Below the pieces are notes generated by a model. That model was not told where the DNA came from. It did not search any database and worked only from the letters and a program-made list of their open reading frames with translations. Below are positions 5,746 to 34,214 of a DNA stretch of 64,000 nt, piece by piece. A program made the position numbers and the translations under genes. Location of the stretch: IMG/VR virus record IMGVR_UViG_3300026521_000471, positions 62,001-126,000 of that record. The stretch is one strand, 5' to 3'. Positions within the stretch are counted from its first letter, which is position 1, and every line of letters starts with the position of its first letter.

Positions 5746-5779
5746 TAAAATGTTAAAAGGTAGTTTTTAATTTAACAAT

Positions 5780-5851
5780 TAACTTGTAGCTATAATGGTA
5801 GAGCGGAGTGTGAAGTTCCTCGCGATATTGGTTCGATTCCAATCAAGTTAA
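5780..5851 (+). pseudogene. Degenerate tRNA-like cloverleaf (anticodon ambiguous, GUG or UGA)
   Basis: Acceptor TAACTTG/CAAGTTA, D arm GCTA..GGTA-GAGC, T arm ATTGG-TTCGATT-CCAAT; irregular anticodon arm, no CCA. Confidence 0.5.
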
Positions 5852-6210
5852 TGGATGATCTCAGGCTATTAATTTATTTTAATAGGAATCGCAAAGAATC
5901 ATCAAATAATTGTTAAATTTAATCTATATATAATAGACAGTAGTTGCAGGAATTGAATTCTCCTAAGACGACTCAATGTGCTAATAATGAAAGGTTAGCA
6001 GTCGCTATATTCTCTGTAAGTGAGATAAGTATGGAAATAAGTTGGTAAAACCAAATGACACCATAAACATTTAAGAAATGTAGTTTGATAATTAGTATGA
6101 AATAACAACCTACGGTTATCAGAGGGTCATCCGACAGATAATTAAGTTTATCTGACCCGTACCTTGGAATAGGTCTAGCGATATTATATATATTTTATAA
6201 ACTATCTTTA

Positions 6211-6865: not shown

Positions 6866-7790
6866 TCGAAACTGATACCACTAAGAAATCTTTGGATTTT
6901 TTAATGGTGCTAGTCACCCATAGTATGATATGGATAACGGGGATAGTATCCCCCGAAGACGGATTTGACAATTCCGTGCTACTTAATTGTAGTCAATTCA
7001 TACAAGCTGACACTTAGGTAGGTTTGTTGCCTATCGGATACTGAAATGTGTCCTATTAGTGAAGTATTGGAATCTGCAGACTAACAATCTGCGTATGTGA
7101 GAGCCATTCGGTGTAGCATACAGAAGCTAGGGATAGTGAAAGGTTCATCCAACAATACGAATTAAGAATAGTGAACAGTAGAATAGGTGTTTGAGTGTAA
7201 AAACAAAGGCTGCTATTCAATACAATAGTATGAGTCCATAAGGCTTACTGCTAGAAGTATGGTGGAAATCGAAAGATGGAAGCAAAGGGTGTGTTGTATT
7301 CTGAAGGTCATACTTTGGAGCAACTGAGCAGACACACCCTTGTCATTATCGTATAGCTCAGGGTAGAGCGTTTTCATTTTAAGGAAAAGGTCGAAGAGTC
7401 GAATCTTCTACGGAAATATTAAAACGGAAAGTTCTGCTCCCTATGTAAAAGGTCGAAAGACCCGACGAAAATAGCCTAATCGCTGACAGTTTAACTGAAT
7501 TGGCGACAATTAGTACCTCCCAAGGGGAAAGTTGTTTGATAGGATGCAGCATTTATTGGGGTAGCTCCTCATTAACGGCCTGTAAGAAGGACGGAAGAAT
7601 GTTGATAATCGAGTAGTCACATAGTAGAGAGGAAATGCTACCTCTGTAAAAAACAAAGCGGCTATGGGAATCAACTATAATGTACTGGGGACAGTAGTTA
7701 TAGTGGATAAGGAGAGAACCTTTTATGGGGACATAATTGGATAATGCTCTGAATGGATTTCTACTAAAAGGTGTAATCTCAACCTTTTAA
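6866..7790 (+). ncRNA. GOLLD-like giant ornate RNA
   Basis: About 900 nt ORF-free, GC-enriched, hairpin-dense region after promoter 6837-6858; GTGTG..TGTATTCT..AGCAACTGAG..ACAC, CGAGTAGT and 3' GTAATCTCA hairpin resemble GOLLD as I recall it; next to tRNAs, with an embedded tRNA. Ends approximate. Confidence 0.7.
7347..7416 (+). tRNA. Degenerate tRNA-Lys(UUU)-like element embedded in the GOLLD-like RNA
   Basis: TAGCTCAGGGTAGAGC D arm, TTTTC-ATTTTAA-GGAAA anticodon arm, aberrant T loop (GTCGAAT), no CCA. Confidence 0.55.
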
Positions 7791-7937
7791 AATAAAATTT
7801 TAATGAGAAAGAATTATAGATAAAGATTACATCGTAATTTTTGAAACAATTGACAGGAACCCGTTCGATTCGTGGTTTTGGAAGCTGGTGCCACTTTAAG
7901 TCTTTATTGCTTCTATCTTTCTCATTAAAATTTTATT
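7791..7937 (+). ncRNA. Structured RNA closed by a perfect 22-bp stem, apical GTTCGATTC T-loop
   Basis: IR 7791-7812/7916-7937. Confidence 0.5.
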
Positions 7938-8057
7938 TAAATATAGTTTAATACAATTTTTATTAATTGAAAATATCTATTCAATTAAGTTTGAGGTGAA
8001 ATAGAAGATTGAGTGAAAGTCTCATATTTAAATAAAATTTAAATTTTTAAGTGTAAA

Positions 8058-8097
8058 TTAAGAAAAATTATTGTATAATTACAGTAATTAAAAAGAA
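8058..8097 (+). promoter_or_regulatory. Promoter of tRNA array 1
   Basis: TTAAG-N11-TATAAT; 8068-8097 is identical over 30 nt to 18591-18620. Confidence 0.7.
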
Positions 8098-8151
8098 AAA
8101 AATAAAAAGTGATATAAATAAAATCACAAAATAAAAATAAGGAGAACGGTT

Positions 8152-8241
8152 ATGAAAATAGTATCAATATTTAACAATTATTTAAACATATTTTATTCGG
8201 CACTAATATCGTACTCTTCTTATTTTAGAGTCTTTCACTAA
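8152..8241 (+). CDS. Leader peptide A (29 aa, MKIVSIFNNYLNIFYSALISYSSYFRVFH)
   Basis: AAGGAG RBS; Ser x5, Tyr x4, Phe x4, Ile x4 (all ATA), one TTA, matching the downstream tRNAs. Confidence 0.8.
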   Translation: MKIVSIFNNYLNIFYSALISYSSYFRVFH

Positions 8242-8330
8242 GAGATAAATTCATTTTTATCCCTTAGTGAAGAACTTAGGGATAAATTGAAAATCTTTCA
8301 AAAATCCCCTATTTTCTTTACAAATTACTT
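8236..8330 (+). promoter_or_regulatory. Attenuator-like switch A
   Basis: Box 1 CACTAAGAGATAAA (8236-8249) and arm 3 (8275-8286) both pair with arm 2 TTTATCCCTTAGTG (8256-8269); C-rich, G-poor tract follows. Confidence 0.7.
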
Positions 8331-8511: not shown

Positions 8512-8570
8512 TAGAAAAAAATAAAAAATTAAGTTAATCTAAAGGATTAATTTGGTATAATAACTTTATA

Positions 8571-8743
8571 AATTGATTGAAATATGAAAACTTGAAAACG
8601 GATTAAACTGTGGTGGTTTATGATGTGGCGAAGTTGTAAACAAAAGAGCCCGGACCATTAGTAAAAGACTAACCATCTTTGAAAGTGGTACGGAAGCTGT
8701 TTGGATGAAGACGGGTACTAAAGTTTTCATTTTTCAGTCAATT
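8571..8743 (+). ncRNA. Structured RNA domain closed by a ~23-bp stem, abutting the permuted tRNA
   Basis: IR 8571-8593/8721-8743 with G.U on the + strand; GC-enriched multibranch interior. Confidence 0.5.
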
Positions 8744-8776
8744 GATTGAGAATTAAACTAAGAAAATACATCGAAG

Positions 8777-8869
8777 TAAAACCGCTGACATATTGTCTTG
8801 TTGGTTCGAGTCCAACCTTCCCCACCAGTTTATATGGGTGAAGTGGTGAAATTGGTAAACACGGCGGAT
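8777..8869 (+). tRNA. Circularly permuted tRNA, best reconstructed as Leu(UAA): 3' half 8777-8827, spacer, 5' half 8836-8869
   Basis: 3' half has V arm, T arm and CTTCCCC-A-CCA; the downstream 5' half GGG(T)GAAG-TG-GTG-AAATTGGTAAA-CAC-GGCGGAT complements both acceptor and anticodon stems; flanks 8744-8772 and 8867-8901 pair. Confidence 0.65.
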
Positions 8870-10265: not shown

Positions 10266-10341
10266 CCCGTTGAAGCTAACTAAGTAGAAGCGCTGGTCTG
10301 AAAAACCAGAGGAGTTGGAGCGTTACCAACCAGCGGGACCA
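10266..10341 (+). tRNA. Non-canonical tRNA-Phe(GAA)
   Basis: Full cloverleaf and CCA, CTGGT-CTGAAAA-ACCAG; no GG in the D loop, T loop AGCGTTA. Confidence 0.75.
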
Positions 10342-10352
10342 TTTTAATTAAT

Positions 10353-10430
10353 GGGACCGTCGAATATCCGGTGACTGTTCGTTGGACTGAAAATCCAAAG
10401 GTAGAGGTTCGACTCCTCTCGGTCCCACCA
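10353..10430 (+). tRNA. tRNA-Phe(GAA)
   Basis: TTGGA-CTGAAAA-TCCAA, T loop TTCGACT, CCA. Confidence 0.9.
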
Positions 10431-12645: not shown

Positions 12646-12685
12646 GGAAGTGTAACCGAGAGTTCGAATCTCTCCACTTCCACCA
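12646..12685 (+). ncRNA. 40-nt tRNA minihelix (acceptor stem + T arm + ACCA)
   Basis: GGAAGTG-TAACC-GAGAG-TTCGAAT-CTCTC-CACTTCC-A-CCA; all 12 bp perfect. Confidence 0.7.
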
Positions 12686-13025: not shown

Positions 13026-15212
13026 ATGAAATGGAATATTAATAAAAAATTAAAAGCCATGACAATCATTCCGAGTATAATAATGATATTTGGATTTGGT
13101 TATCTGGTTTATACCGATTATAATGAATATCGAGATTTAGTTGTTTTAGAAAAAACAGTTAAAATCGATACACATATTAATCATTTAGTGCATTTCTTGC
13201 AACAAGAAAGAGGAGCTAGTGCTGGATACGTAGCATCCAATGGTAAAAAATTTAAAAATCAACTATCTGAAATTCGTAAAAAAACTGATACAAAATTCAC
13301 TATCTTAGAGAAAGCATTAAAAGGTAACAGAAATCATTTTACATTAGAAATGTCTAGAAAAATAGATGAGGCACTTCAAATGTATAACGAACTTTCCGTT
13401 ATGCGAAGTAGTATTGATAATTTAACAATAACCGTTCCAGAAACTGTTAAATACTTTAGTTCCATGAATGCAACCTTTTTAGATTTTATTAAACTAAGTA
13501 AAGATTTATCTAATGATAATGAATTTTCAAAACAACTTTCAGTAATTACAGCTATTAGTGCTACAAAAGAATTAGCAGGTAAAGAAAGAGCTGTTATGAC
13601 AAGTGTTTTTGCTAAAGATAAATTTATAGATGGTTTCTATGCACAATTTAAAACTTTAGTAGCATTACAGAAAAGTTATATGGAAAGTTTTAGATTACTT
13701 GCAACTCCAACAGCAATTAAAATTCTTAATGAAATATCTTCTACTTCTCCTTTTTTAGACGTTGAAGAAATGCGAAAGATTGCAATGGAACGAAATAAAG
13801 ATGGGGCTTTTGGTGTTGACTCGGTAAGATGGTTTGATACTATGACTAAAAAAATAAATGGTATGGAACAAATCGAACATAAATTAGAAAATATTCTTCT
13901 AGATGAAATTGATAGTCAAATGAAATATTTATTGTCGATGGTTATTACAATGTTTATCCTTGCAGTCTTAATTACATCTAGTTTAACTTATGCAGGGTAT
14001 AAATTTAATAAATTTTTAATCGATAGAGTGAACAAGATGAATATTATTTTAGAAGATTCTATTAATACTCATAGCTATGATGAACAATTATTAATTTCTA
14101 ATGATGATGAATTATCAAAGATAGAAAATGCAATTAATAAAATGTTTGTGAGTTTAACTGAAGCTGCAGAGGCTAGAAGAATTTCGGATATTGAAATAAA
14201 GAAAAAAGCTGAAGAAACTGCAAAACTATTAGCAAGAAATAATATGAATCTTAAACTGAATAAACTAATGAGTACGCATACAACCGATAACCTAAATGAT
14301 ATTAAAGATGGGCTGAGTGATGGGACTGAAGAATTAGAAAAAATTAATGAAATTAATGATAAAGCCCAAGATAATTTTAATTCTGTTATTGCGGCTAAAA
14401 ATACTATGGTTACTACTTTAGAAACCGTTTCTGAAGGAATGAATTCTACAACAGAAAGAGCGGAACAATTAGAAGAATCTGTTAATGAAATTGCAAGCAT
14501 TATTGGTTTAATCAAAGATATTTCTGAACAAACAAACTTACTTGCACTTAATGCAGCTATTGAAGCAGCAAGAGCGGGTGAGCATGGACGAGGTTTTGCC
14601 GTGGTTGCTGATGAAGTTCGTAAACTAGCTGAGAGAACAGCTGTTGCAACTAAGAATGTAGAAGCGAGTATTAATATCGTTAAACAAAATACTTCTGAAA
14701 TGAATGAAAGTACTGAACAAATGACAGAAAGTATTAAAGATGCTCAAGAGGTATCTCATACTCTAGATGTAGAATTAGACACCTTAATATCTATCAATAG
14801 AAATAATACTGTTAGAAATAATATGATTAGTGAAGATATTCTTGTTACCCTTACTAAATTAGAACATGTTATTTTTAAAATAATGGGTTATAATAGCGTT
14901 TTAGAAGAATGTACAAAATGTGAACCTGTCACTCATGAAGCTTGTAGATTTGGACAATGGTATAAAACTGAGGGAAAAAATAGATATAGTAAAAATTCAT
15001 CTTTTAGAAGTATCGAAATACCGCATAAAGAAGTCCACGAAAATGTTAGAAAAGCCGTTGAATTAATAGGCAAAAAAGATGATGATACTATTATTCGATA
15101 CTTTGAGATCGTAGAAGTAAATTCTAAAAAATTATTTGATCTTTTGACAAGAATAGTTAAAGAAGAAAATGATAAAATGGTTCTGGAGATTAATGATGGA
15201 AAAAATAAATAA
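13026..15212 (+). CDS. Methyl-accepting chemotaxis protein with NIT sensor and C-terminal CZB domain
   Basis: [17 protein letters not shown] (NIT)-TM-HAMP; [35 protein letters not shown] signalling tip; [16 protein letters not shown]. Confidence 0.9.
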
Positions 15213-15859: not shown

Positions 15860-17050
15860 TATAATTTCCTAAGTAAGTTACTAATATTTAGTGTAATTCG
15901 GATATGATTCCATCTTACTATAAAAATCAAAGTTTCACAAAGATCGGGCTTTGTAGGTTAATTAGTTTTGCCTTAGAATAGGTGATCTTTATCGTCAGTA
16001 TATCCATTATATCGATAGTAGAGCGAAAGCGTAGAAGCTGATATAAAGGTGCGATGCCACACAATTAGAATAGTATTAAAGTTGCTACTACCTCAGGACG
16101 AGCAGTTTGATTCTGATGGGTTCGAGTCCCATGATTGAGGAAGGAAGGTTAAGTTCGAGTCTTAACAGTAGCAACTTTTAATTTATTTAAGTTAAGTGTA
16201 TTACTTAGTTTAATTAAATTAAAACATCGGGAAATATTGGTATGGAATCCAATGGTGAATAAATTATTTTTTTCATTTCGACTAAGAACCAGTAGGAAGG
16301 TCACCCGAAATAGTTTAGCAGTTAAAGGTAGATTTGAAACTGTTAAGTAATATTAGCAATTGCAAGCCAATATGAAAATTTAATGGATTAAATAATGAAT
16401 TGAGGGCTTTCTTTGGGTTCTGCAGCGAAAAAGAAAGAACGGTTGCAAACACGTAAAAATGTTGGGAATAATATAATAGTATATTAAATATGCCGACTGG
16501 ATACCGTCTCAGTATGAGCTTAACTCAATTCATTATTTAGTCTATTATAAATAAATTAGTAGCTTCAAGAAATTAAGTTTGATAGTAAAAGCAAATTCTT
16601 TTTAGAATTGAGTGTTAGTGCAAGTCTAACCTAGTTGAATTTATAATAGACATTTTAATCATTTTATAAAGATTACCCTAACCGATAAGGAAATTAGTAC
16701 TAGCCTTATTCGTACAGTTGTACTTATATAATAATTACCTATACGTAAAAAATTGATTTTGGTGATGGATAAGAATTATAATACTAAAGAACCGTTTGAA
16801 CCAATAATCAGAAGAACTGTCTCTCTGAGCAATGGGTAATCTTTATAAGGTGATTAGACTCCATAATTTTTCGTTTTTAGATTACCTCCGAAGGGGTTTA
16901 AAAAATTATGCCTTTTCACCGGTTTTAAATACCATTGGCAGTCGGAGATTGATAAAAAAGTATTGCTTTTTTATTAAGGTTTGTAAGTGAACTAATCAGA
17001 CGTAGAATTTAAGAGTAAGATAATTTCAAGCTATTAAATGACAACCATAA
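15860..17050 (+). ncRNA. ORF-free array of tandem stem-closed structured RNA modules
   Basis: Promoter 15844-15865; perfect IRs 16078-16089/16167-16178, 16390-16404/16524-16538, 16540-16552/16639-16651, 16664-16678/16834-16848. Confidence 0.55.
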
Positions 17051-17135
17051 AATTAAGTGAGTTTTTGGTCTCACTTAAAAATACTTTTTGACTTTATTGT
17101 ATAATAATATATAATCTAATAATAAAGGAATATAT

Positions 17136-17882
17136 ATGTCATATGATTGGTCTAAATACTCTGCATCATCCGATTCTAAAACTCTTAATAGTACAAATCA
17201 ACCAACACTTAAAGAACTTCGAGAAGCATTAATACGACCTTTAGGCGAAAGTATTAATGAAGCAATTGAAGAACATGTATCTACTGCAATGGCAAAAATC
17301 ATTACAGGTAATAATAACGCTGACTCAGCTTTAAGTAACTCTTTGAATAATCAATTAAAAGTTAATGAATCATCATTAGAAAATATATTAAAAAATAATG
17401 AAATATCATTAGAAGCACGAATTAAAAAAACCACAGAAATTATTACTGGTATATTAGTAGGAATATATGATGAAGATATAATAGAAGATACCTTAAAATC
17501 TATCGATATTAATAACTTAACATCAATTAATGATAATTGGGATGGTTTAGAAAAGGGTGCGTCATTTATGAAAAATGACATAAAAAGAAATTCTAATTTT
17601 ACCATGGATAATGGGACGGAACATAATCCAGTAGATCCATTGATTGAATTAACAAGAGCCGTAAAAAGTCTAGTTGTGCAACATACTTGGATGTCAGTAA
17701 AATCTGATAAACAGGCTAGCAATATGGGTGTTGCTGTAGATGGTGTTGTTTCTGAAGCCTTTTACAATGATGCAAAAGCCGCAAATAGAAAAGTAGCAGA
17801 AGATACAGTTCATCAGATTTTAAATTTAGATGGTACACATGATGATGACGGAATTTATCCAAATAATCAGGGATTTGAATAA
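17136..17882 (+). CDS. Hypothetical protein
   Basis: ORF track; AAGGA RBS; coupled to the PAAR gene. Confidence 0.75.
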   Translation: MSYDWSKYSASSDSKTLNSTNQPTLKELREALIRPLGESINEAIEEHVSTAMAKIITGNNNADSALSNSLNNQLKVNESSLENILKNNEISLEARIKKTTEIITGILVGIYDEDIIEDTLKSIDINNLTSINDNWDGLEKGASFMKNDIKRNSNFTMDNGTEHNPVDPLIELTRAVKSLVVQHTWMSVKSDKQASNMGVAVDGVVSEAFYNDAKAANRKVAEDTVHQILNLDGTHDDDGIYPNNQGFE

Positions 17883-18178
17883 TGGGTACTTTAGCGGGTA
17901 GAGTCCCAGATTTAAATACAGGTCACCCACCTTGTTTTACACCTACCGTAGCTATTACAGGTTCTCCAACAGTATTTGCAAATTCATTACCAGCTCATAG
18001 AATGGTTGATTTACATATCCCACATCCTTGTCCTGGAATACCACCACATCCAGTATTTCAAGCGATAGGATGTTCGAGAGTATATGTAAATTCATTAATG
18101 TGGGCTGGAGTTGGACATCCTCAATTATGTCTATCTTTATTATTAACCGGTTCACCGACAGTATTTGTATGTATTTAA
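17882..18178 (+). CDS. PAAR-repeat tail-spike tip protein (T4 gp5.4-like)
   Basis: GH..C.PT..ITGSPTVFANSLPAHRM.D...PH.C and terminal TGSPTVF repeat. Confidence 0.85.
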   Translation: MGTLAGRVPDLNTGHPPCFTPTVAITGSPTVFANSLPAHRMVDLHIPHPCPGIPPHPVFQAIGCSRVYVNSLMWAGVGHPQLCLSLLLTGSPTVFVCI

Positions 18179-18191
18179 AGGAGAGAAATAA

Positions 18192-18578
18192 ATGGACTTA
18201 ACACAAGATGAAATGACAAAATTAAAAAAATTATTAAAAAGTATAAAGTCAATCGAGTCGTCAAATAATATAGATACTATCACGTTTAATAAAACGGTAG
18301 TACTAGAATCTGAAGATAACTTTATAACAATCGCAAATGGTTTTGCAATAACTCAAGCTAAGCAAGTACACCTAAATCCTTTTGAGACTAAAAAAGATAT
18401 AACAGATTCACTTTTGACGTTAGAAAGTCTAGAGTTTAAGAAAAAAATTGTTGAATCTATTGTTTCAAAATTAAATATTATTGCGTCTATAGATGAAATA
18501 GAAGGGATTGTTTCTGGTAGAATTGATATTAATGATTTAATTGATATTGAATCGTTAAAACAATCACAGTTAAGTTAA
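18192..18578 (+). CDS. Hypothetical protein
   Basis: ORF track; AAGGAG RBS. Confidence 0.7.
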   Translation: MDLTQDEMTKLKKLLKSIKSIESSNNIDTITFNKTVVLESEDNFITIANGFAITQAKQVHLNPFETKKDITDSLLTLESLEFKKKIVESIVSKLNIIASIDEIEGIVSGRIDINDLIDIESLKQSQLS

Positions 18579-18580
18579 TT

Positions 18581-18620
18581 TTAAGAACATTTATTGTATA
18601 ATTACAGTAATTAAAAAGAA
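18581..18620 (+). promoter_or_regulatory. Promoter of tRNA array 2
   Basis: TTAAG-N11-TATAAT; 30 nt identical to the array-1 promoter. Confidence 0.7.
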
Positions 18621-18733
18621 TTTAACATTTTTTAAAAAGAATTTCAAAATTTTAGCTAATTTAAGGTTAAAAAAAGAAAACTTTTTGTATAATGTTATAA
18701 ATAAAAATAAAAATTAAATCAAGGAGAATAGTA

Positions 18734-18841
18734 ATGAAAACTATTACACTACAAAATAAAAATATTACTACTATTCATAATGCCAATAAACCGGCGGTCC
18801 TTGAAATTATTAAACAAGAACAGGATAAACAGATTCTGTAA
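18734..18841 (+). CDS. Leader peptide B (35 aa, MKTITLQNKNITTIHNANKPAVLEIIKQEQDKQIL)
   Basis: AAGGAG RBS; 33 of 34 non-Met residues are amino acids served by array-2 tRNAs; Ile only ATT, Leu only CTN. Confidence 0.8.
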   Translation: MKTITLQNKNITTIHNANKPAVLEIIKQEQDKQIL

Positions 18842-18935
18842 GAGATAATTAATCTTATCTTTTACAGAATTGGTTTTCTGTGAGAGATAAGATATTCTAA
18901 ATATCTATTCTCCCACAAAACCTTTTCAATTTTTA
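18834..18935 (+). promoter_or_regulatory. Attenuator-like switch B
   Basis: Box 1 (18834-18848) and arm 3 (18876-18893) both complement arm 2 (18852-18869); C-rich tract follows. Confidence 0.75.
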
Positions 18936-18990
18936 ATATTATTTTAAGATAATTAATTGTATAATTCACTATATCAATTAAGGATTTAAA

Positions 18991-19113
18991 ATGGTTTACT
19001 TTATAACTAGTATTCTGATTCCATCAGTAGTACTTTTAGGTTTAATGTATGTTGTGTATCATCAATATGGTGAAATGAAATACAAAAGTGAAAAACGAAA
19101 AAATAAAAATTAA
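18991..19113 (+). CDS. Small membrane protein (40 aa)
   Basis: Own promoter at about 18944, AAGGA RBS, one hydrophobic helix and a basic tail. Confidence 0.55.
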   Translation: MVYFITSILIPSVVLLGLMYVVYHQYGEMKYKSEKRKNKN

Positions 19114-19225
19114 GGAACGAGTCAATGAAAGACAAGAGCGACAAGTGTCGTAAAACAATTCAAACTCTGTTTTCTTAAATAGTCATTAAAAGTGATTGTT
19201 TAGGATGCGGAGTATAAACTATTCC

Positions 19226-19302
19226 GTATCCGTAACTCAACTGGATAGAGTATTCGGCTTTTAACCGAAAGGTTGTGAGTTCAAGTCTCACCGGATACAC
19301 CA
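19226..19302 (+). tRNA. tRNA-Lys(UUU) copy 1
   Basis: TTCGG-CTTTTAA-CCGAA, CCA; D loop carries A20. Confidence 0.9.
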
Positions 19303-19304
19303 TT

Positions 19305-19380
19305 GGGTGTATAGCTCAGTTGGTAGAGCACATCACTTTTAATGATGGGGTCTAGGGTTCAAATCCCTATGCACCCACCA
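19305..19380 (+). tRNA. tRNA-Lys(UUU) copy 2
   Basis: CATCA-CTTTTAA-TGATG, CCA. Confidence 0.93.
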
Positions 19381-19464
19381 ATGTAGCATTTTACTAAGAA
19401 GATTAGATTCTTTTTATTAAAGTGTTATTGTTAGGACGCTAACATAACTCTTAGGAGTATTTTT

Positions 19465-19539
19465 ATAGTAGTAATAACCTTTGTCGGTTTCTCCTTACTA
19501 AGGAAATGAGTTCGAGTCTCATTAAAGGCTTACTACTAT
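19465..19539 (+). ncRNA. D-armless tRNA-like element in a long closing stem
   Basis: ATAGTAGTAA/TTACTACTAT stem, CCTTT/AAAGG, anticodon-like hairpin and T arm TGAG-TTCGAGT-CTCA. Confidence 0.45.
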
Positions 19540-19599
19540 ATCAAAAAGTAATAGCGTGGAGTAATTAACCACAAAATTATATACTCCGATTTTAAATAT

Positions 19600-19675
19600 T
19601 GCGGAGTGGAGCAGTTGGTAGCTCGCTGGGCTCATAACCCGGAGGTCATTGGTTCAAGTCCAATCTCCGCCACCA
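19600..19675 (+). tRNA. Initiator tRNA-fMet(CAU)
   Basis: 1:72 mismatch (U.C), three G-C pairs closing the anticodon loop, CCA. Confidence 0.93.
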
Positions 19676-19719
19676 AATTTTAAAAATTAGATTTTTTTAA
19701 CAATGTGTATAAATAGATT

Positions 19720-20008
19720 ATATATACATTTTTAAGAGAATTAAAGATGGAAATTACATCGAATTATTGGAAATTAGGAAACAACTTTCCATTGATTTTA
19801 TCTCTTACAACCGAGAAAAAGCCATAAATTGAGTGGTGTTGTAAAACTAAGAGTTGTCTAAGTTACCTGAAAGAATGGTTATTAAATAGATGCACCCAGT
19901 AAGAAAGTGCCGGGCATCAACTAAACTTAATATTATTAATTTAATATGAATGACAAACGGGCGGAGTATGGTATAAACAGGGCAGCTCAAAATTTATAAA
20001 TGTATATG
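19720..20008 (+). ncRNA. Unidentified structured RNA between fMet and Ala tRNAs
   Basis: Late promoter 19708; terminal stem 19722-19731/19998-20007; several internal hairpins; no convincing ORF. Confidence 0.4.
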
Positions 20009-20013
20009 AAAAT

Positions 20014-20089
20014 GGGGCATTAGCTCATCTGGGAGAGCGCTACCCTTGCAAGGTAGAGGCGAACGGTTCGAGTCCGTTATGCTCCACCA
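20014..20089 (+). tRNA. tRNA-Ala(UGC)
   Basis: G3.U70, CTTGCAA loop, CCA. Confidence 0.95.
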
Positions 20090-20171
20090 TTTTTAAAAAT
20101 TTATTAAAGCTTTTAATAAAAGTTTTAACAAGTTTTTACTTGAAAATAAAAATTAAATTAAGGAAATTAGT

Positions 20172-20330
20172 ATGAGAACAATTAATACAATTACAACTAC
20201 TGTAAATACACTTATTAATAACACTATTGATACTCATGCAAATGATATTATTAATATTCATACTAATGAACAAATTCTGGATATTCAGCCGAATATTCAA
20301 GAAGATGAGCAGGAACCAATCTTTCTGTAA
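20172..20330 (+). CDS. Leader peptide C (52 aa, MRTINTITTTVNTLINNTIDTHANDIINIHTNEQILDIQPNIQEDEQEPIFL)
   Basis: AAGGA RBS; 47 of 51 non-Met codons are Ile/Thr/Asn/Asp/Gln/Glu/Leu(CTN)/His/Pro, the downstream tRNA set; no Lys, ATA or TTA. Confidence 0.85.
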   Translation: MRTINTITTTVNTLINNTIDTHANDIINIHTNEQILDIQPNIQEDEQEPIFL

Positions 20331-20430
20331 GAGATAACTTAAACTTTATCCCTTACAGAGAGATTTGTAGGGGATAAAAGAAACAAACTTTCCACTTTCT
20401 TTTCTCAATCCTTTACAAACTCTCTAAATT
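20324..20430 (+). promoter_or_regulatory. Attenuator-like switch C
   Basis: Box 1 (20324-20337) and arm 3 (20364-20377) both complement arm 2 (20345-20359); long G-free C/T-rich tract follows. Confidence 0.75.
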
Positions 20431-20435
20431 ATTAT

Positions 20436-20519
20436 TGTGATATGCGCCGAATGGTAAGGTAGCCGACTGTTAATCGGTCGAGAGAAATCTCATTGCTGGT
20501 TCGAATCCAGCTATCACAG
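20436..20519 (+). tRNA. tRNA-Asn(GUU) with an unusual long variable arm
   Basis: GCCGA-CTGTTAA-TCGGT, V hairpin GAGA-GAAA-TCTC, G73; followed by CC then the next tRNA. Confidence 0.85.
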
Positions 20520-20521
20520 CC

Positions 20522-20598
20522 CGTCCCTTAGCTCAGTTGGTTAGAGCGTTCCGCTGATAACGGAGAGGTCGGAAGTTCAAATCTTCCAGGGACGACCA
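20522..20598 (+). tRNA. tRNA-Ile(GAU)
   Basis: TTCCG-CTGATAA-CGGAG, CCA. Confidence 0.95.
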
Positions 20599-20612
20599 TA
20601 AAAATTAAATAC

Positions 20613-20689
20613 GGTCTGTTAGTTCAGTTGGTTAGAACGCAACCCTGTCAAGGTTGAGGTCACCGGTTCGAGTCCGGTACAGATCGCCA
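20613..20689 (+). tRNA. tRNA-Asp(GUC) copy 1
   Basis: CAACC-CTGTCAA-GGTTG, G73, CCA. Confidence 0.95.
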
Positions 20690-20693
20690 TTAC

Positions 20694-20767
20694 TGAGGTA
20701 TCGTCTAGTGGTAGGACATCTGGTTTTGGTCCAGAGAGCGGGGGTTCGAACCCCTCTACCTCGTCCA
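20694..20767 (+). tRNA. tRNA-Gln(UUG) copy 1
   Basis: TCTGG-TTTTGGT-CCAGA, CCA. Confidence 0.93.
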
Positions 20768-20780
20768 TTGTGTATTTTGC

Positions 20781-20851
20781 TGGGCTATCGTCTAGTGGCA
20801 GGACTCCGTCTTTTGGCGGCGGTAACATAGGTTCGAATCCTATTAGCCCAT
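20781..20851 (+). tRNA. tRNA-Gln(UUG) copy 2
   Basis: CCGTC-TTTTGGC-GGCGG; no encoded CCA. Confidence 0.9.
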
Positions 20852-20895
20852 CAAAGTACATTGTACTTTTATCAATGAAGATATAAAAATAAAAC

Positions 20896-20970
20896 GGCTC
20901 CATGGAGAAGTGGTTATCTCATCGCTCTTTCACAGCGAAATCTCGGGTTCAAATCCCGATGGAGTCACCA
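20896..20970 (+). tRNA. tRNA-Glu(UUC) copy 1
   Basis: TCGCT-CTTTCAC-AGCGA, CCA. Confidence 0.95.
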
Positions 20971-20979
20971 AATTTAATT

Positions 20980-21062
20980 GCCGAAATGGTGGAATTGGTA
21001 GACACGCTAGACTTAGGATCTAGTGCTTTTGCGTGAGAGTTCGAGTCTCTCTTTCGGCACCA
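20980..21062 (+). tRNA. tRNA-Leu(UAG)
   Basis: CTAGA-CTTAGGA-TCTAG, V arm, CCA. Confidence 0.95.
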
Positions 21063-21132
21063 TTATATCAATTTATTGATGAAGCCTTAATTTAAATATT
21101 AAAGTTTCACAAATAAATTGTTACGAGCTTTA

Positions 21133-21232
21133 GAATCGCACATAGGATACGCGGCCTATGTAGCAGAAGTACCCACTTTAAGGAGGGAGATAGATTTCAA
21201 GGGATTGAAATTGAATATCCAGAATGCGATTC
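21133..21232 (+). ncRNA. Unidentified multibranch RNA inside tRNA array 2
   Basis: Closing stem GAATCGCA/TGCGATTC with three internal hairpins. Confidence 0.45.
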
Positions 21233-21242
21233 ATTAAAAAAT

Positions 21243-21319
21243 GTCGATGTATATCAACTGGTTAGATTGCCACCCTGTCAAGGTGGAGGTTGTGGGTTCG
21301 AGTCCCATCATTGACGCCA
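21243..21319 (+). tRNA. tRNA-Asp(GUC) copy 2
   Basis: CCACC-CTGTCAA-GGTGG, G73, CCA. Confidence 0.92.
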
Positions 21320-21322
21320 AAT

Positions 21323-21397
21323 GCTTCGTTCGACTATCGGCTAGGTCATTAGGTTTTCATCCTAAAAAGAGGGGTTCGATTCCCCTACGAAGTACCA
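21323..21397 (+). tRNA. tRNA-Glu(UUC) copy 2
   Basis: TTAGG-TTTTCAT-CCTAA, CCA. Confidence 0.92.
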
Positions 21398-21410
21398 TTT
21401 TTTATTATAA

Positions 21411-21488
21411 CGGGGTGTGGGAAAGTTTGGTTAATCCGCTACTTTTGGGAAGTAGAAATCCTCAGTTCGAGTCTGAGCACCCCGACCA
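21411..21488 (+). tRNA. tRNA-Pro(UGG)
   Basis: C1-G72, TTTGGGA loop, CCA. Confidence 0.93.
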
Positions 21489-21501
21489 TTTACATATCAA
21501 T

Positions 21502-21577
21502 GCCGATTTAGCTCAGTTGGTAGAGCAACTCACTTGTAATGAGTAGGCCTGGAGTTCAAATCTTCAAATCGGCACCA
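21502..21577 (+). tRNA. tRNA-Thr(UGU)
   Basis: ACTCA-CTTGTAA-TGAGT, CCA. Confidence 0.95.
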
Positions 21578-21595
21578 CTTCTAATTGTTAAATAT

Positions 21596-21673
21596 GGTAG
21601 TAGTAGCTCAGTTGGTTAGAGCGACGGTTTGTGGCACCGTAGGTCGTGGGTTCGAATCCCATCTATTACCCCA
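21596..21673 (+). tRNA. tRNA-His(GUG)
   Basis: G-1:C73, ACGGT-TTGTGGC-ACCGT, CCA. Confidence 0.95.
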
Positions 21674-21675
21674 TT

Positions 21676-21762
21676 GTCGATATGGTGAAATTGGTAAACA
21701 CACTACCTTGAGGGGGTAGCGCCTATTAAGGTTTGAGAGTTCGAATCTCTCTATCGACACCA
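21676..21762 (+). tRNA. tRNA-Leu(GAG)
   Basis: CTACC-TTGAGGG-GGTAG, V arm, CCA. Confidence 0.95.
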
Positions 21763-21833
21763 TCTTTTAATTCTCCTTTCAATCAAATTTCATTAAATCT
21801 TAGAATAAATAAAAATAAAAAAAGAGGTTTCAA

Positions 21834-22076
21834 ATGAATCTTAAATCAATTATCGAATCATCTTATGAAGATAGAGTTTGTGAATGCAATAATATTTCCA
21901 GAGGTGAGTTATTAAAGCAATCTTCATTCAATCAAGCATTAACAGCAAAAGAAGTAATAGAATCTTTAGTGAAAAAAGGATGTGGATGCTGTTTAAAAAA
22001 TAAAGACGATTGGGAAAATTCTTCATGTAGAGAAAAAAAAGAATTAGTTATTCATTACTCAGATATAATCAGATAA
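21834..22076 (+). CDS. BFD-like [2Fe-2S]-binding protein
   Basis: VCECNNIS...GCGCC pattern. Confidence 0.65.
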   Translation: MNLKSIIESSYEDRVCECNNISRGELLKQSSFNQALTAKEVIESLVKKGCGCCLKNKDDWENSSCREKKELVIHYSDIIR

Positions 22077-22146
22077 TATATTAAAATCATTTATAAATAA
22101 TATTGATTTGTTTTACAAATTACTATTTTATAAATGGAGAAAATTT

Positions 22147-22596
22147 ATGTATAATTTTGGAAAAAGAAGTAGAAGCAGACTTGACACTTGTCACCCAGAC
22201 TTAATTAAGATTATGGAAGAAGCTATTAAAGTTTTTGACTTTTCTGTTTTGGAAGGCATTAGAACTACTGAAAAACAACAAGAATATTTTGAAACAGGTA
22301 GAAGTAAATTAGATGGCATTCATAAACTATCTAAACATCAAGACCATGGAGATGGTTTATCTCATGCAATCGATATTATGCCTTATAAAAAAGGGACAAA
22401 TGCTTTTAGTGGAAAAGAGAAAGATAAAGCAAGGTTTTATTTCTTGGCAGGATTGATTAAAGGTATTACTTATAGACTTTTAGAAGAAGGAAAAATTTCA
22501 CATACTATTAGATGGGGTGGAGATTGGGATTCCGATGATATCTTTAATGATCAAAATTTTGATGATTTACCTCACTTTGAGTTAAAAGCTATTTAA
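22147..22596 (+). CDS. Endolysin, M15 L-Ala-D-Glu peptidase family
   Basis: EGIRT..Q, SKH, HAIDI, WGGDW, DLPHFEL; start moved to ATG 22147. Confidence 0.88.
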   Translation: MYNFGKRSRSRLDTCHPDLIKIMEEAIKVFDFSVLEGIRTTEKQQEYFETGRSKLDGIHKLSKHQDHGDGLSHAIDIMPYKKGTNAFSGKEKDKARFYFLAGLIKGITYRLLEEGKISHTIRWGGDWDSDDIFNDQNFDDLPHFELKAI

Positions 22597-22683
22597 TATA
22601 AGAAATTTACCTACTCTTTGACTAAATTTAATATAAAATTAAGTATAAATAAATTAAAATTAAATTAAAAAAGAGCAGGTAAT

Positions 22684-22980
22684 ATGTACAAATTTAAACC
22701 CTCCCCTCTTGTTGAAAAACTATACGAAGAAATTAACAAATCAATAAATTCATCATCAGAAATAGAATCTTATATTGTAGATGGTATAATCAGCGGATTA
22801 TTATTAGAATATATGGAAGCAACTAGTAAAAATCAAGAATTTAATGGATTTGGTTCTCTTAATGCCGATGACTTTGATAAACTTGTGGGTTTAATTGATG
22901 AAGAAAATGCACCTTTTGAGGACATAACGCCGATTGAAGAAGTATTAGGTAATATAGATAGCTTTGAAAATGAGGATTAA
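22684..22980 (+). CDS. Hypothetical acidic late protein
   Basis: ORF track; TATAAATA 22644. Confidence 0.65.
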   Translation: MYKFKPSPLVEKLYEEINKSINSSSEIESYIVDGIISGLLLEYMEATSKNQEFNGFGSLNADDFDKLVGLIDEENAPFEDITPIEEVLGNIDSFENED

Positions 22981-22983
22981 TAT

Positions 22984-25131
22984 ATGCAACTGAAAGATTT
23001 ATTATGTGAAAAAATCACTCCAACTGATAAAGATATTATCGATTGTGTTACAGCTGTTGGTATAAAAGGTATGTATTTAAATGCCACCGATAAAAAAGAG
23101 TTACCAAAAAATAATAAAGTTTTAAATTCCTATAATAAAATACAAAATGATTTTATGTTCATTATGAAAAAATTTACTACATTGACTAAATTTTATTTTA
23201 GAGAATCAGATAAAACAATGAAAGGTAATACTGAGAAAGCAGCACAATATCTATTATTAAATAAAGATAAATATAACACAATTAAATCAACATATGACTT
23301 TATTGAAAAGAGTATTAAAACATTTAAAAGTAATACTAAAAAGATAAAAAAAATTATTAATAATTCTAGGAAATCTAAAAATGAAAAACTACTTTTAGAT
23401 TTAGATATTCTGGAATCTAAATTAACTAAAACATTAAGTTTAATAAATTATACAGAAAGAACTTTGGATAATGTGAAATCTGTTTTAGATTTAGTAGAAA
23501 AACCTAATTTCCAATCAGCATTCGGAATTGTTACAACTTTAAAAGCCAAAAATAAAGTTTTAACTGAAAATGCTATGCTTGACATAAGTATCCCGAATCT
23601 AGATAAAGTTGTAACCAATGATGAAAAATTAGAAACTTTTTTATTAGATTATTATCGAATAGAAGAAAAATTTGATGGGACAAAACTGACGTTATGGCGA
23701 AATAGCAATGAATGGGAAGAAGATTATCGTAAAAATTGGGTAGTTTCATTTAAAAACCAAATTTTATATCCAGCTGAATTTGACAAGATTGATAGAAATA
23801 TTATTAAAAAATATTCATTAGGTATTTCACAATATGCATTTATTCATGATCACCTTAAAAGATTTCATAAAAATACTAAAGATATACCAACAAATACTGA
23901 ATTCTTTATAGAATTTATACAAAATAAATTAACCACTACTAGAGATTATAAAAAACAACATGATCTATTTCTTATTGCTTATTCACCTGCTAAGGGAAGT
24001 ATTGAGGGTGGCATGCTAAAGACCTCCCCTATTGGGTTTTTTCAGCAGGATTTAAATATATTTAGTGAAATCTTATCTTTAAAAATGCCTCCCGTAGTTT
24101 TTCATGGACAAATAAATTCTGAAGAAAATTTTACGAAAGGCATTAAAAATAATAATCTTATGAATGCTTGGATTAGTAATAAACATTTATTTGAGAAAAA
24201 TAAATATGATACTATTAAGAAAACATTATTATCATTTGAATCTATATTAGGTGGAAAAACTGAGGGAGTAGTACTTCATTCTTCTAGTGGCACAATGTTT
24301 AAATTTCTACAAGATGACCAACATGATAAAAGTGTAAGATTTGCTAAAAAATTAAGATTTCAAAATAGCAAAGAAATTGAAGAAAAATATTGGTCTGAAA
24401 TTTATATTTTAGCTAAGGAAAATATAGACAATATAGAAAATCTTAATAGTAATAATTATGAAATAAATCTTAGTAAAATAGTTAAAGCTATTTATAGTAT
24501 TAAAGATAATAGAATTAAAAGTCTTTTTACCTTTAAATTTAAAGCCATGAAAAAAGAAGATAAATTGACTGATGATAAGGCTTTAATACAAAAGATTAGA
24601 GATGATTTGCATTTAACATCAAAACAATTACTTATGGATAAGCTTCCTGAAAATCAGAACGCACTTTTTATTGGGAAATTAAGAGTACCTACTAAAGCTC
24701 ATACTGATATTATTAGAAAAGCTATAGACAAGTATAATCATGTGATTATTTGTATTGTGAAAGCCAAAAAAGATAATAAACTGTCTTTAAACTTAGAATA
24801 TCAAAAAAAGATTCTAAAAAGATTATTTGGTGAAAAAGTAACTATTATTGAACATAGTACTGGAAACTTAACTTCAATTATAAATAAATCACCAAAAAGA
24901 ATTAAATTCTTATTAACCGGTACTGATAGAATTGAAAGTTATAAAGGTCAGTTAAAAAGACATCCTCAGATCAATATGATTGAAATAGAAAGGGATGAAG
25001 AATCAGTTGATAATATTTCAGCCACAAAAACAATAGATTATATTAGAAATAATAATATAAGTGGTTTTAAGGAAATGGTGGATATAGAAATATGGGATGA
25101 ATTTGAGAATATAAGAGAGGTGTTAAAATGA
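22984..25131 (+). CDS. ATP-dependent ligase-like nucleotidyltransferase fused to an HxGH cytidyltransferase-like domain
   Basis: Motif I IEEKFDGTK, EFFIEF, EGVVL, FKF; C-terminal GKLRVPTKAH...GTDR. Confidence 0.65.
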   Translation: MQLKDLLCEKITPTDKDIIDCVTAVGIKGMYLNATDKKELPKNNKVLNSYNKIQNDFMFIMKKFTTLTKFYFRESDKTMKGNTEKAAQYLLLNKDKYNTIKSTYDFIEKSIKTFKSNTKKIKKIINNSRKSKNEKLLLDLDILESKLTKTLSLINYTERTLDNVKSVLDLVEKPNFQSAFGIVTTLKAKNKVLTENAMLDISIPNLDKVVTNDEKLETFLLDYYRIEEKFDGTKLTLWRNSNEWEEDYRKNWVVSFKNQILYPAEFDKIDRNIIKKYSLGISQYAFIHDHLKRFHKNTKDIPTNTEFFIEFIQNKLTTTRDYKKQHDLFLIAYSPAKGSIEGGMLKTSPIGFFQQDLNIFSEILSLKMPPVVFHGQINSEENFTKGIKNNNLMNAWISNKHLFEKNKYDTIKKTLLSFESILGGKTEGVVLHSSSGTMFKFLQDDQHDKSVRFAKKLRFQNSKEIEEKYWSEIYILAKENIDNIENLNSNNYEINLSKIVKAIYSIKDNRIKSLFTFKFKAMKKEDKLTDDKALIQKIRDDLHLTSKQLLMDKLPENQNALFIGKLRVPTKAHTDIIRKAIDKYNHVIICIVKAKKDNKLSLNLEYQKKILKRLFGEKVTIIEHSTGNLTSIINKSPKRIKFLLTGTDRIESYKGQLKRHPQINMIEIERDEESVDNISATKTIDYIRNNNISGFKEMVDIEIWDEFENIREVLK

Positions 25132-32363: not shown

Positions 32364-34214
32364 ATGAGAACAAACTATAATTTAGAAATTAGAAAAAATT
32401 ATATAGATAAGGAAGTTACGGTTTCGGGGTGGGTTAATTCAATCCGTGACCATGGTGGCGTTTACTTTATTGATTTAAGAGATACTTCCGGTATTGTACA
32501 AATTGTTGCAAATCCAACTTCTTTAACAGAAGATGAATATGAAAAGTATCACGCTTTAAGAGATGAGTGGGTAATTGAAGTTACTGGTAAAGTTAGACTT
32601 CGTGGAGAAGGTCTTGAAAATCCAAAATTATTAACTGGTGAAATTGAAATTGTTGCAGAAGATTTAAAAATTCTAAGTAAAGCAAAAACATTACCGTTCC
32701 AACCTGGAGACGAATCTGTTAATGATGATTTAAAGCTTAAATACAGATATTTGGATATGAGAGATAACAAACTGCAGGATACTCTTACTAAAAGAAGTGA
32801 TATGGCGTTTAATATCAGAGTTGCTCTGCATAACGAATTAGATTATGCGGAAATCGAAACTCCAATCTTAATGAAGTCATCTGAAGGTGGAGCAGAAGAA
32901 GTATATGCCACTTCTAAACTATTTCCTGGAGAATTCTATTCACTGCCACAATCACCACAATTATATAAACAGTTACTTATGATTGGTGGGAGAGAAAAGT
33001 ATTATTCATTTGCAAAATGCTTTAGAGCTGAAAGTGCTCGTAAAGATAGAAACATCGAATTCACACAAATAGATATGGAACGATCTTTTTCAGATAGAAA
33101 TGGTATTTTAAAAGATGTTACTAAAGTTTTAACTGCAGCTTTTGAAACAACCAATGTCGATTTTGATAAAATTAATAATGATGTTAGAGAAACAGTCCGG
33201 TGGCTTGATAGTATTAGTATTGAAGGTGAAATTGATTCTTCAGCTGATATTTTAATTCCTATGATCAAATACAATGACGCATTAAACTACTTCGGTAGTG
33301 ATAAGCCGGATTTACGTTTCAAAATGTCATTGATTGAAGCTAAGAAACTTTTTATTAATACTGATTTTACGGTTTTTAAAGATATTGCTAAAAAGGATAA
33401 TACAGTTGTTAAAGCTTTAGTGGCTAAAAATGCAGACTATCCAGACAAACTATCTAAAAAGAAAATTAAAGATTTAGAAAAATTTGTTAGTGAATTTGGA
33501 GCTAAAGGTTTAGCTTATTTTCAAATGAAAGAAGAAGGCCTAAAAGGTCCTTTAACTAAATTTCTAAAACAAGTGGATTTAGATTTAATCCAAATTGAAT
33601 GTGAATTAGAAGTAGGTGATATTGTTTTCTTTGGAGCAGGTGATAAAGATACCGTTTTAGATTACATGGGTCGACTAAGAATTAAAATAGCAGAAGAGTT
33701 AAATTTAATTAATGATAAATTCATACCATTATTTGTTACTGATTTTCCTATGTTTGAAAAAGGTAAAGACGGCACAATTAAAGCTATGCACCATCCATTT
33801 ACAGCACCTATAATGGAATCTTATACAAATTATTTAAATGATGAATGTGACCTTACAGAAATTCTTACTGATAGTTATGATCTTGTTTTAAATGGTGTGG
33901 AATTAGGTGGTGGTTCAGTAAGAATTTATGATGAAGAGTTACAAGAAAATATATTTAAGATTATGGGGCTTACTGATGAGGAAATAAAAGAAAAATTTGG
34001 TTTCTTTACAGAGGCTTTACAGTATGGTACTCCGCCACATTGTGGATTTGCTTTTGGTTTTGATAGATTAGTTTCACTATTATTAAAAAAAGAAACTATT
34101 AGAGAAGTAATAGCATTTCCTAAAAATCAAAGTGGTCTATGTCCTATGTCTGAATCACCAAATAAACCGGATGTTAATCAATTAAAAGAATTAGGTTTAA
34201 GAATAAAATCTTAA
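32364..34214 (+). CDS. aspS: Aspartyl-tRNA synthetase, bacterial type, probably non-discriminating (Asp/Asn)
   Basis: RDHGG..FIDLRD OB fold, LPQSPQLYKQLLM, CFRAE, EFTQIDME, GAD insert, PPHCGFAFGFDRL. Confidence 0.97.
   Translation: MRTNYNLEIRKNYIDKEVTVSGWVNSIRDHGGVYFIDLRDTSGIVQIVANPTSLTEDEYEKYHALRDEWVIEVTGKVRLRGEGLENPKLLTGEIEIVAEDLKILSKAKTLPFQPGDESVNDDLKLKYRYLDMRDNKLQDTLTKRSDMAFNIRVALHNELDYAEIETPILMKSSEGGAEEVYATSKLFPGEFYSLPQSPQLYKQLLMIGGREKYYSFAKCFRAESARKDRNIEFTQIDMERSFSDRNGILKDVTKVLTAAFETTNVDFDKINNDVRETVRWLDSISIEGEIDSSADILIPMIKYNDALNYFGSDKPDLRFKMSLIEAKKLFINTDFTVFKDIAKKDNTVVKALVAKNADYPDKLSKKKIKDLEKFVSEFGAKGLAYFQMKEEGLKGPLTKFLKQVDLDLIQIECELEVGDIVFFGAGDKDTVLDYMGRLRIKIAEELNLINDKFIPLFVTDFPMFEKGKDGTIKAMHHPFTAPIMESYTNYLNDECDLTEILTDSYDLVLNGVELGGGSVRIYDEELQENIFKIMGLTDEEIKEKFGFFTEALQYGTPPHCGFAFGFDRLVSLLLKKETIREVIAFPKNQSGLCPMSESPNKPDVNQLKELGLRIKS

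Follow-up and report, generated by a model that had tools for sequence, protein, structure and literature searches.

The stretch analysed here, a window of 64,000 nucleotides (positions 62,001 to 126,000) of the 224-kb viral contig IMGVR_UViG_3300026521_000471, is AT-rich (about 28% GC), carries all its genes on the + strand and encodes, among others, an MCP-type chemoreceptor, an AspRS and a GroEL. GenBank holds no cultured relative, and its phages contain nothing similar either to the element described below or to an 826-aa protein of the window. Within the second of the window's tRNA arrays, ARAGORN and Rfam identify tRNA genes in the order Lys, Lys, Met, Ala, followed by a short open reading frame (leader C) and then by 13 further tRNA genes: Asn, Ile, Asp, Gln, Gln, Glu, Leu(UAG), Asp, Glu, Pro, Thr, His and Leu(GAG). 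The Met tRNA has initiator-like features, namely three G:C pairs in the anticodon stem and a 1-72 mismatch, as read from the sequence. Leader C comprises 52 codons and is preceded, seven bases before the ATG, by a good Shine-Dalgarno sequence, which aligns with the AAGGAG of two paralogous elements elsewhere in the window (A and B). Coordinates of all features are given in the table.

Positions of leader C, its paralogues and associated features within the 64-kb window
Feature	Position	Strand	Description
Upstream hairpin	20094..20138	+	A/U-rich hairpin directly after tRNA-Ala
Shine-Dalgarno sequence of leader C	20160..20165	+	AAGGAA
Leader C ORF	20172..20330	+	52 codons plus TAA
Segment 1 of C	20319..20337	+	Last three sense codons, stop codon (20328-20330) and 7 more bases
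Segment 2 of C	20346..20364	+	Pairs with segment 1, or through 20345-20359 with segment 3
Segment 3 of C	20364..20383	+	Degenerate copy of segment 1; pairs with segment 2 (15 bp, -19.5 kcal/mol) or with segment 4
Segment 4 of C	20396..20419	+	3' arm of hairpin 3:4 (20364-20419); followed by ACTCTCTAAATTATTATT
Downstream tRNA genes	20436..21762	+	13 tRNA genes whose codons make up leader C
Paralogue B	18686..18934	+	Promoter TGTATAAT 18686-18693; ORF 18734-18841 (5 Lys, 2 Ala); segments 18833-18848 / 18855-18870 / 18872-18893 / 18903-18922; U-run TTTTCAATTTTT 18923-18934
Promoter downstream of B	18958-18965		TGTATAAT, followed by a 40-codon ORF before the Lys tRNAs
Paralogue A	8072..8319	+	Promoter TGTATAAT 8072-8079; ORF 8152-8241 (5 Ser UCN, 4 Tyr); segments 8230-8248 / 8257-8275 / 8275-8292 / 8297-8311; U-run TTTTCTTT 8312-8319; then tRNA-Ser 8332 and tRNA-Tyr 8427

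A sequence-only reading of this locus had proposed that leader C is an internal second checkpoint, without an obvious promoter of its own, whose codons match only the tRNAs further downstream, and had reported that 47 of its 51 codons belong to that set. This observation is confirmed. The codon counts are exactly as reported: Ile 11 (ATT 10, ATC 1), Thr 9, Asn 8, Asp 4, Gln 4, Glu 4, Leu 3 (all CTN), His 2 and Pro 2, with the remaining four codons specifying Arg, Val, Ala and Phe; there is no Lys, no ATA and no TTA or TTG. To establish whether such a composition might arise by chance, we derived background codon usage from 56 + strand genes (14,967 codons), in which Lys accounts for 9.9% of codons, ATA for 35% of Ile, and TTA plus TTG for 68% of Leu. 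Codons read by the 13 downstream tRNAs make up 43.6% of codons in genes, against 47/51 in leader C (P=3e-13), and the best of 12,055 sliding 51-codon stretches of real genes has 36. The absence of Lys alone has a probability of 0.005, and the joint absence of Lys, ATA and TTR one of 2e-5. The repeated promoter of this phage (extended -10 TGTATAAT) is indeed absent in front of C.

Leader C is not a singleton. The motif CTGTAAGAGATAA, which contains the stop codon, recurs in the window, and alignment reveals three paralogous elements that share an A-rich 5' UTR with its Shine-Dalgarno sequence and the region from the last codons onward, whereas the ORF bodies differ in length (29, 35 and 52 codons in A, B and C) and in sequence. 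A covariance model built on the RNA switch described below finds only these three copies in 64 kb, all inside tRNA arrays. Their codon content differs in step with their neighbours. A, which stands directly before tRNA-Ser(UGA) and tRNA-Tyr, has 9/28 Ser(UCN) or Tyr codons against 8.6% in genes (P=4e-4). In B, 33/34 codons fall in the set of the whole of array 2 (P=9e-7), and B adds Lys and Ala to the repertoire, whereas C has no Lys, with Ala only among its four out-of-set codons. No stretch of the same length in real genes reaches any of these values. Synonymous choices are the most telling, because amino-acid composition cannot explain them: B and C together have 0 ATA among 17 Ile codons (P=6e-4) and 0 TTR among 6 Leu codons (P=1e-3), while A uses ATA for all 4 of its Ile codons. 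The tRNAs present are Ile(GAU), Leu(UAG) and Leu(GAG). In addition, G-ending, wobble-read codons are about twice as frequent in the leaders as in genes (11% against 5.4%), which fits a design for sensitivity.

We next asked whether relatives exist. Exact-pattern scans for the stop-codon hairpin were largely unproductive: in IMG/VR only the source contig was a real hit, the other 20-odd being chance matches, and all of the 120 hits in genome contigs were chance, the only one next to a tRNA being the rpsI terminator of a Rickettsiaceae MAG. The metagenome scan yielded at least two contigs of a related phage (L084 and L087). Searches with the leader C peptide, and then with a profile of four leaders, gave 13 further homologues (P0002-P0014), on contigs numbered L300-L316 and L318-L320, and a profile of B-type leaders added only two more. 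In contrast, relatives found through the neighbouring endolysin-like gene share only that gene, without synteny or tRNAs, one of them being a bacterial contig with a tmRNA, and a search with the protein encoded at 17136-17882 found only the source contig. In total, relatives of the element occur in at least five other uncultured phage lineages. A-type elements stand before Ser, Tyr and Ser tRNAs; B-type elements before Lys, Lys, Ala, with or without Val and Met; C-type elements directly before the Asn/Ile/Glu/Gln/Asp/Pro/Thr/His/Leu(CUN) block. AAGGAA or AAGGAG lies 7-8 bases before the ATG in all 19 leaders.

One alternative might be that these are small-protein genes, cassettes of promoter, small ORF and terminator encoding functional micro-peptides, whose codon match merely reflects tuning of a highly expressed gene to the tRNAs the phage supplies. 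Some motifs are indeed kept among C-type peptides (NTIDTH, DEQEPIFL), the gene callers of several projects called these ORFs, and most copies have their own promoter and a terminator-like hairpin. However, across ten distinct C-type leaders, compared with the column majority, we find 78 non-synonymous against 16 synonymous variant codon types, along with frequent indels in low-complexity runs, so that amino-acid identity is not conserved. What is conserved is the codon set: 86-96% of codons in these leaders lie within it, and 69 of the 78 non-synonymous variants (88%) remain in it, against 48% expected from single-base neighbours (P=6e-14). Lys is absent from 9 of the 10 leaders and occurs once, at position 2, in the other; ATA occurs once and TTR twice in 514 codons. 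The A, B and C peptides share no common motif, the conserved C-terminal motif coincides with segment 1 of the RNA helix described below, and no Pfam or PHROG family matches the peptides. General tuning to phage tRNAs would moreover not exclude Lys from C, because the phage carries two tRNA-Lys, nor use ATA in A but ATT in B and C. We therefore regard this alternative as unlikely; that the peptide might prove to be a conserved functional protein had been named beforehand as a refuting condition, and it is not one.

Leader content also varies with gene content. B-type leaders in arrays that contain tRNA-Val(UAC) (L087, L309, L310) have 3, 5 and 5 Val codons, whereas those in arrays without it (window, L306, L308, L300) have 1, 0, 1 and 0, that is, 13/105 against 2/143 (Fisher P=6e-4). 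P0020, a leader from a further array in which no tRNA-Val was detected (L312), also has none. Note that this comparison rests on one clade split and hence counts as a single evolutionary contrast. There is also a counter-example: the L309 lineage keeps 7 Thr codons, yet a dedicated search found no tRNA-Thr downstream.

The region 20090-20435 folds far better than shuffled sequence (z=-8.0). In each element the last three sense codons, the stop codon and 7 further bases form segment 1, which is followed, after a loop of 6-12 bases, by segment 2; segment 3 is a degenerate copy of segment 1, and segment 4 closes a long hairpin with segment 3. Helix 1:2, assessed over 18 sequences, is 95% paired (slid controls give about 45%) and has 6 pairs with compensatory changes, values reached by 0 of 500 shuffles. 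All 17 complete elements show three competing, mutually exclusive helices, with 1:2 at -15 to -21, 2:3 at -13 to -24 and 3:4 at -11 to -22 kcal/mol. Between types, segments 1, 2 and 3 change together, CACTAAG/CTTAGTG/ACTTAGG in A against CTGTAAG/CTTACAG/TGTAGGG in C, so that both 1:2 and 2:3 are maintained. Within the C type, 2:3 is nearly invariant (96.6% paired), while 3:4 is 92% paired with 3 compensatory pairs. In A and in most B copies, 3:4 is followed at once by a U-run. In every C-type copy, regardless of lineage, the tail has no U-run, and a consensus scan reports no + strand terminator-like site in 20090-20435; termination at 20345-20430, where the sequence-only reading required a termination or processing site, is thus not shown for C.

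Given these hairpins, one might suspect an RNA-only element, in which the ORF is incidental and the helices act as processing, stability or insulator signals of the pre-tRNA transcripts, for example as RNase III/E sites or as plain terminators between units. The hairpins are the most conserved parts, more so than the ORF body; C, lacking a U-run, ends 16 bases before a tRNA, where processing must occur; and other repeated non-coding motifs exist between tRNAs in relatives. Yet an open frame of 28-58 codons in 28% GC DNA is kept in every copy, with a strong Shine-Dalgarno sequence at the right spacing and the stop codon at an invariant column of helix 1:2, and the codon set is under selection and differs between A, B and C in step with the neighbouring tRNAs. 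An RNA-only role explains none of these features, and we consider it improbable.

A further possibility is that leader C, in this genome, is a relic: a once autonomous unit that lost its promoter, and possibly its terminator tail, when it became fused behind tRNA-Ala, and that no longer regulates anything. In the L087, L309, L320 and L318 lineages the C-type leader does have its own TGTATAAT or TGTAAAAT promoter, and in L087, L309 and L310 a ~173-aa gene lies between the upstream tRNAs and the leader. However, in the window and in L306, L300, L315 and L313 the leader follows tRNA-Ala by about 85 bases and the upstream stretch, which includes the A/U-rich hairpin and carries no TGTATAAT, is conserved. 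The leaders of these five distinct lineages differ at 4-37% of residues yet keep 42-48 of 48-51 codons in the set and all three helices. Promoter-bearing C-type copies lack the U-run too, so that its absence is a property of the type rather than decay. A relic thus also seems unlikely. Transcription of C must come from upstream, or from an unrecognised promoter in the conserved stretch 20094-20160. Nested control within one operon, as the sequence-only reading inferred, is therefore plausible and conserved in five lineages, but unproven, and it is not a defining feature of the family. Nor can the leader be the only control, since a further promoter and a small ORF lie between B's terminator and the Lys tRNAs and a promoter-like GGTATAAT follows the A-type terminator in L084; control is layered at best.

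How might such a switch operate? The only evident effector is a ribosome translating the ORF. Constrained folds show that with the A site six codons before the stop, helix 1:2 is intact, whereas with the A site on the last ~3 codons or on the stop, segment 1 is unwound to its very end and segment 2 is freed. In B the minimum-energy fold then flips to 2:3. In A and C, 3:4 remains the full-length optimum, so that 2:3 would have to win kinetically, because it is made first, as is also the case in trp. Most sensor codons lie further upstream, and stalls there would leave 1:2 intact. We therefore rejected a trp-like reading in which a stall at any sensor codon masks segment 1: that starvation opens the switch does not follow from the geometry. 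Overall, the interpretation offered by the sequence-only reading is partly supported, in that a leader-peptide type sensor with position-aware codon content, rather than a protein gene, is well supported, whereas termination at C, starvation-induced opening and true nesting are not established.

We suggest that leader C is one member of a family of ribosome-operated RNA switches in front of blocks of tRNA genes in a group of uncultured giant phages. In this view, the ORF acts as a track made from the codons that the downstream tRNAs read, so that the time a ribosome needs to cross it would report the supply of exactly those charged tRNAs. Without a ribosome, 1:2 would form first and leave segment 3 free to pair with 4, which in A and B would be an intrinsic terminator in front of the tRNAs; a ribosome at the ORF end would allow 2:3 to form and so preclude 3:4. 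The outcome would then depend on whether a ribosome occupies the ORF end during the second or so in which segments 3 and 4 are transcribed and, because sensor codons fill the whole ORF, what is measured is probably cumulative transit time. For C itself, without a U-run, the output may be weak termination, pausing, or altered processing of the precursor 16 bases before the first tRNA. Our analysis demonstrates the ORF, its codon set, selection on that set, the three helices with their covariation, and the exclusive association with tRNA arrays, whereas translation of the ORF, transcription as the output, its response to charged-tRNA supply and the sign of control are inferred from sequence. We put a probability of about 0.65 on a translation-sensing switch that controls the downstream tRNAs.

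Within that reading we are about evenly divided as to sign. Under a licensing scenario, a ribosome that arrives in time turns the switch on, while one stalled far upstream leaves it off. Under a homeostatic scenario, a tightly coupled, fast ribosome has terminated and left, 1:2 re-forms and the switch is off; a moderately delayed ribosome is in place and the switch is on; and a severe stall again leaves it off. The architecture favours the former and the biology of phage tRNAs the latter. More speculatively, and in our view slightly less likely than not, these phages may carry a modular, reprogrammable family of codon-track sensors, each tRNA sub-operon being governed by a leader whose repertoire is rewritten over evolutionary time to mirror the tRNA genes behind it (Val codons appearing with tRNA-Val, Lys and Ala codons only upstream of the Lys and Ala tRNAs), with the cumulative transit time of one ribosome, rather than a stall at one site, setting read-through. 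This would be the first tRNA-gene homeostat operated by ribosome-mediated attenuation, and a timing mechanism distinct from the trp paradigm.

Current ideas on why phages carry tRNA genes, an open question along with how they dose them, invoke codon compensation, replacement of a decaying host pool, and escape from tRNA-cleaving defences, none of which comes with a known regulatory circuit. A leader whose codons are exactly those of the tRNAs it precedes would mean that the phage measures decoding capacity codon by codon and adjusts its own tRNA supply, an idea that the element renders directly testable with simple reporters. It would extend leader-peptide attenuation from amino-acid metabolism to stable-RNA genes and offer a natural, modular sensor of the supply of chosen tRNAs. 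Searches of part of the literature found no description of leader-peptide control of tRNA genes, in phages or in cells.

The closest parallels are the leader-peptide transcription attenuators of enterobacterial amino-acid operons (trpL, hisL, thrL, leuL, pheL and the multivalent ilvL). As there, we find a short ORF with a functional-looking ribosome-binding site, enriched in sensor codons, including rare ones, and segments 1-4 with mutually exclusive 1:2, 2:3 and 3:4 helices, along with, in A and in most B copies, a hairpin plus U-run in front of the putatively regulated genes; like ilvL and thrL, the element would sense several amino acids at once. However, the genes in question are tRNAs rather than biosynthetic enzymes, and the sensor codons fill the whole ORF (up to nine amino acids and 47 of 51 codons) instead of clustering on segment 1. 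The stop codon lies inside segment 1 and segment 2 starts 16-22 bases after it, so that a terminating ribosome would free segment 2, whereas in trp it covers it, and the C type lacks a U-tract. The pheST attenuator of E. coli (pheM leader) likewise applies leader-peptide attenuation to a component of the translation apparatus for the same amino acid, but it controls a synthetase rather than tRNA genes, uses a single amino acid and has classical geometry; the possibility that E. coli tRNA-Phe genes have a Phe-rich leader was rejected because pheV has a promoter directly upstream and no leader ORF. T-box riboswitches serve a similar purpose, tying gene expression to the state of a particular tRNA through an antiterminator/terminator choice, but a T-box binds the uncharged tRNA directly and has no ORF, and neither a T-box nor any other Rfam cis-regulatory family matches here (only tRNA matches and weak chance hits in 17000-23000 at E<=1, and nothing at gathering scores). 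Finally, if the licensing scenario holds, the element would resemble translation-coupled antitermination of the pyrBI leader type, where a ribosome keeping pace with the polymerase prevents the terminator from forming; in pyrBI, however, the signal is polymerase pausing at low UTP and the ribosome covers the terminator itself, whereas here an intermediate helix, 2:3, would do the work and the signal would be decoding speed.

The sequence just upstream of leader A resembles GOLLD, a large non-coding RNA, with a score of 110.7 bits (E=4e-29) that nonetheless falls below the Rfam gathering score of 150. A tRNA-like gene is embedded in this GOLLD-like element, which is about 71% conserved in the related phage (contig L084). 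A second region without an ORF, about 250 nt in length, follows a phage-type promoter (TGGTATAAT) and ends in a tRNA-like T-arm, acceptor and CCA; its 3' part is likewise conserved in L084, and a comparable T-arm/acceptor fragment elsewhere in the window gives a weak hit to the tmRNA model. A repeated promoter module, with TTAAG..TTTTAAGAA upstream elements plus an extended -10 TGTATAAT, is found at about 18 sites in the window, and this looks like the phage's early promoter consensus.

Features of the window and of related contigs, with their positions
Sequence	Position	Feature
Window	7284-7785 (conserved block 7049-7951)	GOLLD-like large non-coding RNA
L084	913-1402	GOLLD-like large non-coding RNA
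Window	7347-7416	tRNA-like gene embedded in the GOLLD-like RNA
Window	8516-8830	Phage-type promoter and region without an ORF
Window	around 8790-8827	tRNA-like T-arm, acceptor and CCA
Window	12646-12685	T-arm/acceptor fragment
Window	5705-54856 (e.g. 6826, 8047, 9834, 18570, 18661, 18927, 52539)	Repeated promoter module
Window	20436-20520	First tRNA after leader C
Window	19835-20000	Conserved non-coding element
L300	1768-1925	Conserved non-coding element
L087	1641-1800	Conserved non-coding element
Window	19470-19535	tRNA remnant
Window	10266-10338, 10353-10427	Tandem tRNA-Phe(GAA) genes
Window	5779-5852	Further tRNA-Phe gene
L309	4100-4150, 4310-4360, 4860-4910	Repeated motif between tRNAs
Window	13026-15212, 32364-34214, 59726-61351	NIT-MCP-CZB chemoreceptor, bacterial-type aspartyl-tRNA synthetase and GroEL
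Window	35868-37421, 38580-39929, 39930-41519, 50040-51350	Four paralogous genes
L030	19661-20009	tmRNA with tag

Reading the sequence directly, we find that the first tRNA after leader C has an Asn anticodon (GUU) but a long, Ser/Leu/Tyr-like variable arm, with G as its discriminator base. Versions of 83-88 nt occur in the related contigs L306, L313, L315 and L319, whereas L300 and L309 have normal tRNA-Asn genes of 74-76 nt. Between the second tRNA-Lys and tRNA-fMet lies a tRNA remnant, in which an intact-looking T-arm is joined to a degenerate remainder, and this is where relatives carry tRNA-Val or an HNH endonuclease gene. The window also holds three tRNA-Phe genes, of which two are in tandem; the first of this pair is divergent and is missed by ARAGORN.

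A conserved non-coding element of about 170 nt, with strongly conserved blocks, is found upstream of tRNA-Ala (upstream of tRNA-Val in L087, a contig of a related phage), although it has no Rfam match and only a weak consensus fold. Another repeated motif, of about 50 nt (..CCTTTACGTGGTT..GTATAAGTAAGAATTTTATTCTGAAACTA..), sits in three gaps between tRNAs of the related phage represented by L309.

Among the protein-coding genes of the phage, the chemoreceptor is also present in its relative L306. The four paralogous genes share DNA blocks that are 60-80% identical (families D2, D4, D7, D10 and D14), and two of them had no Pfam match when tested. Finally, L030, a contig that shares only the endolysin-like gene (71% identity), carries a tmRNA with tag ANTTNYRPALAVA and a GroEL. 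The tag resembles those of Campylobacterota, which is a weak hint to the host group.
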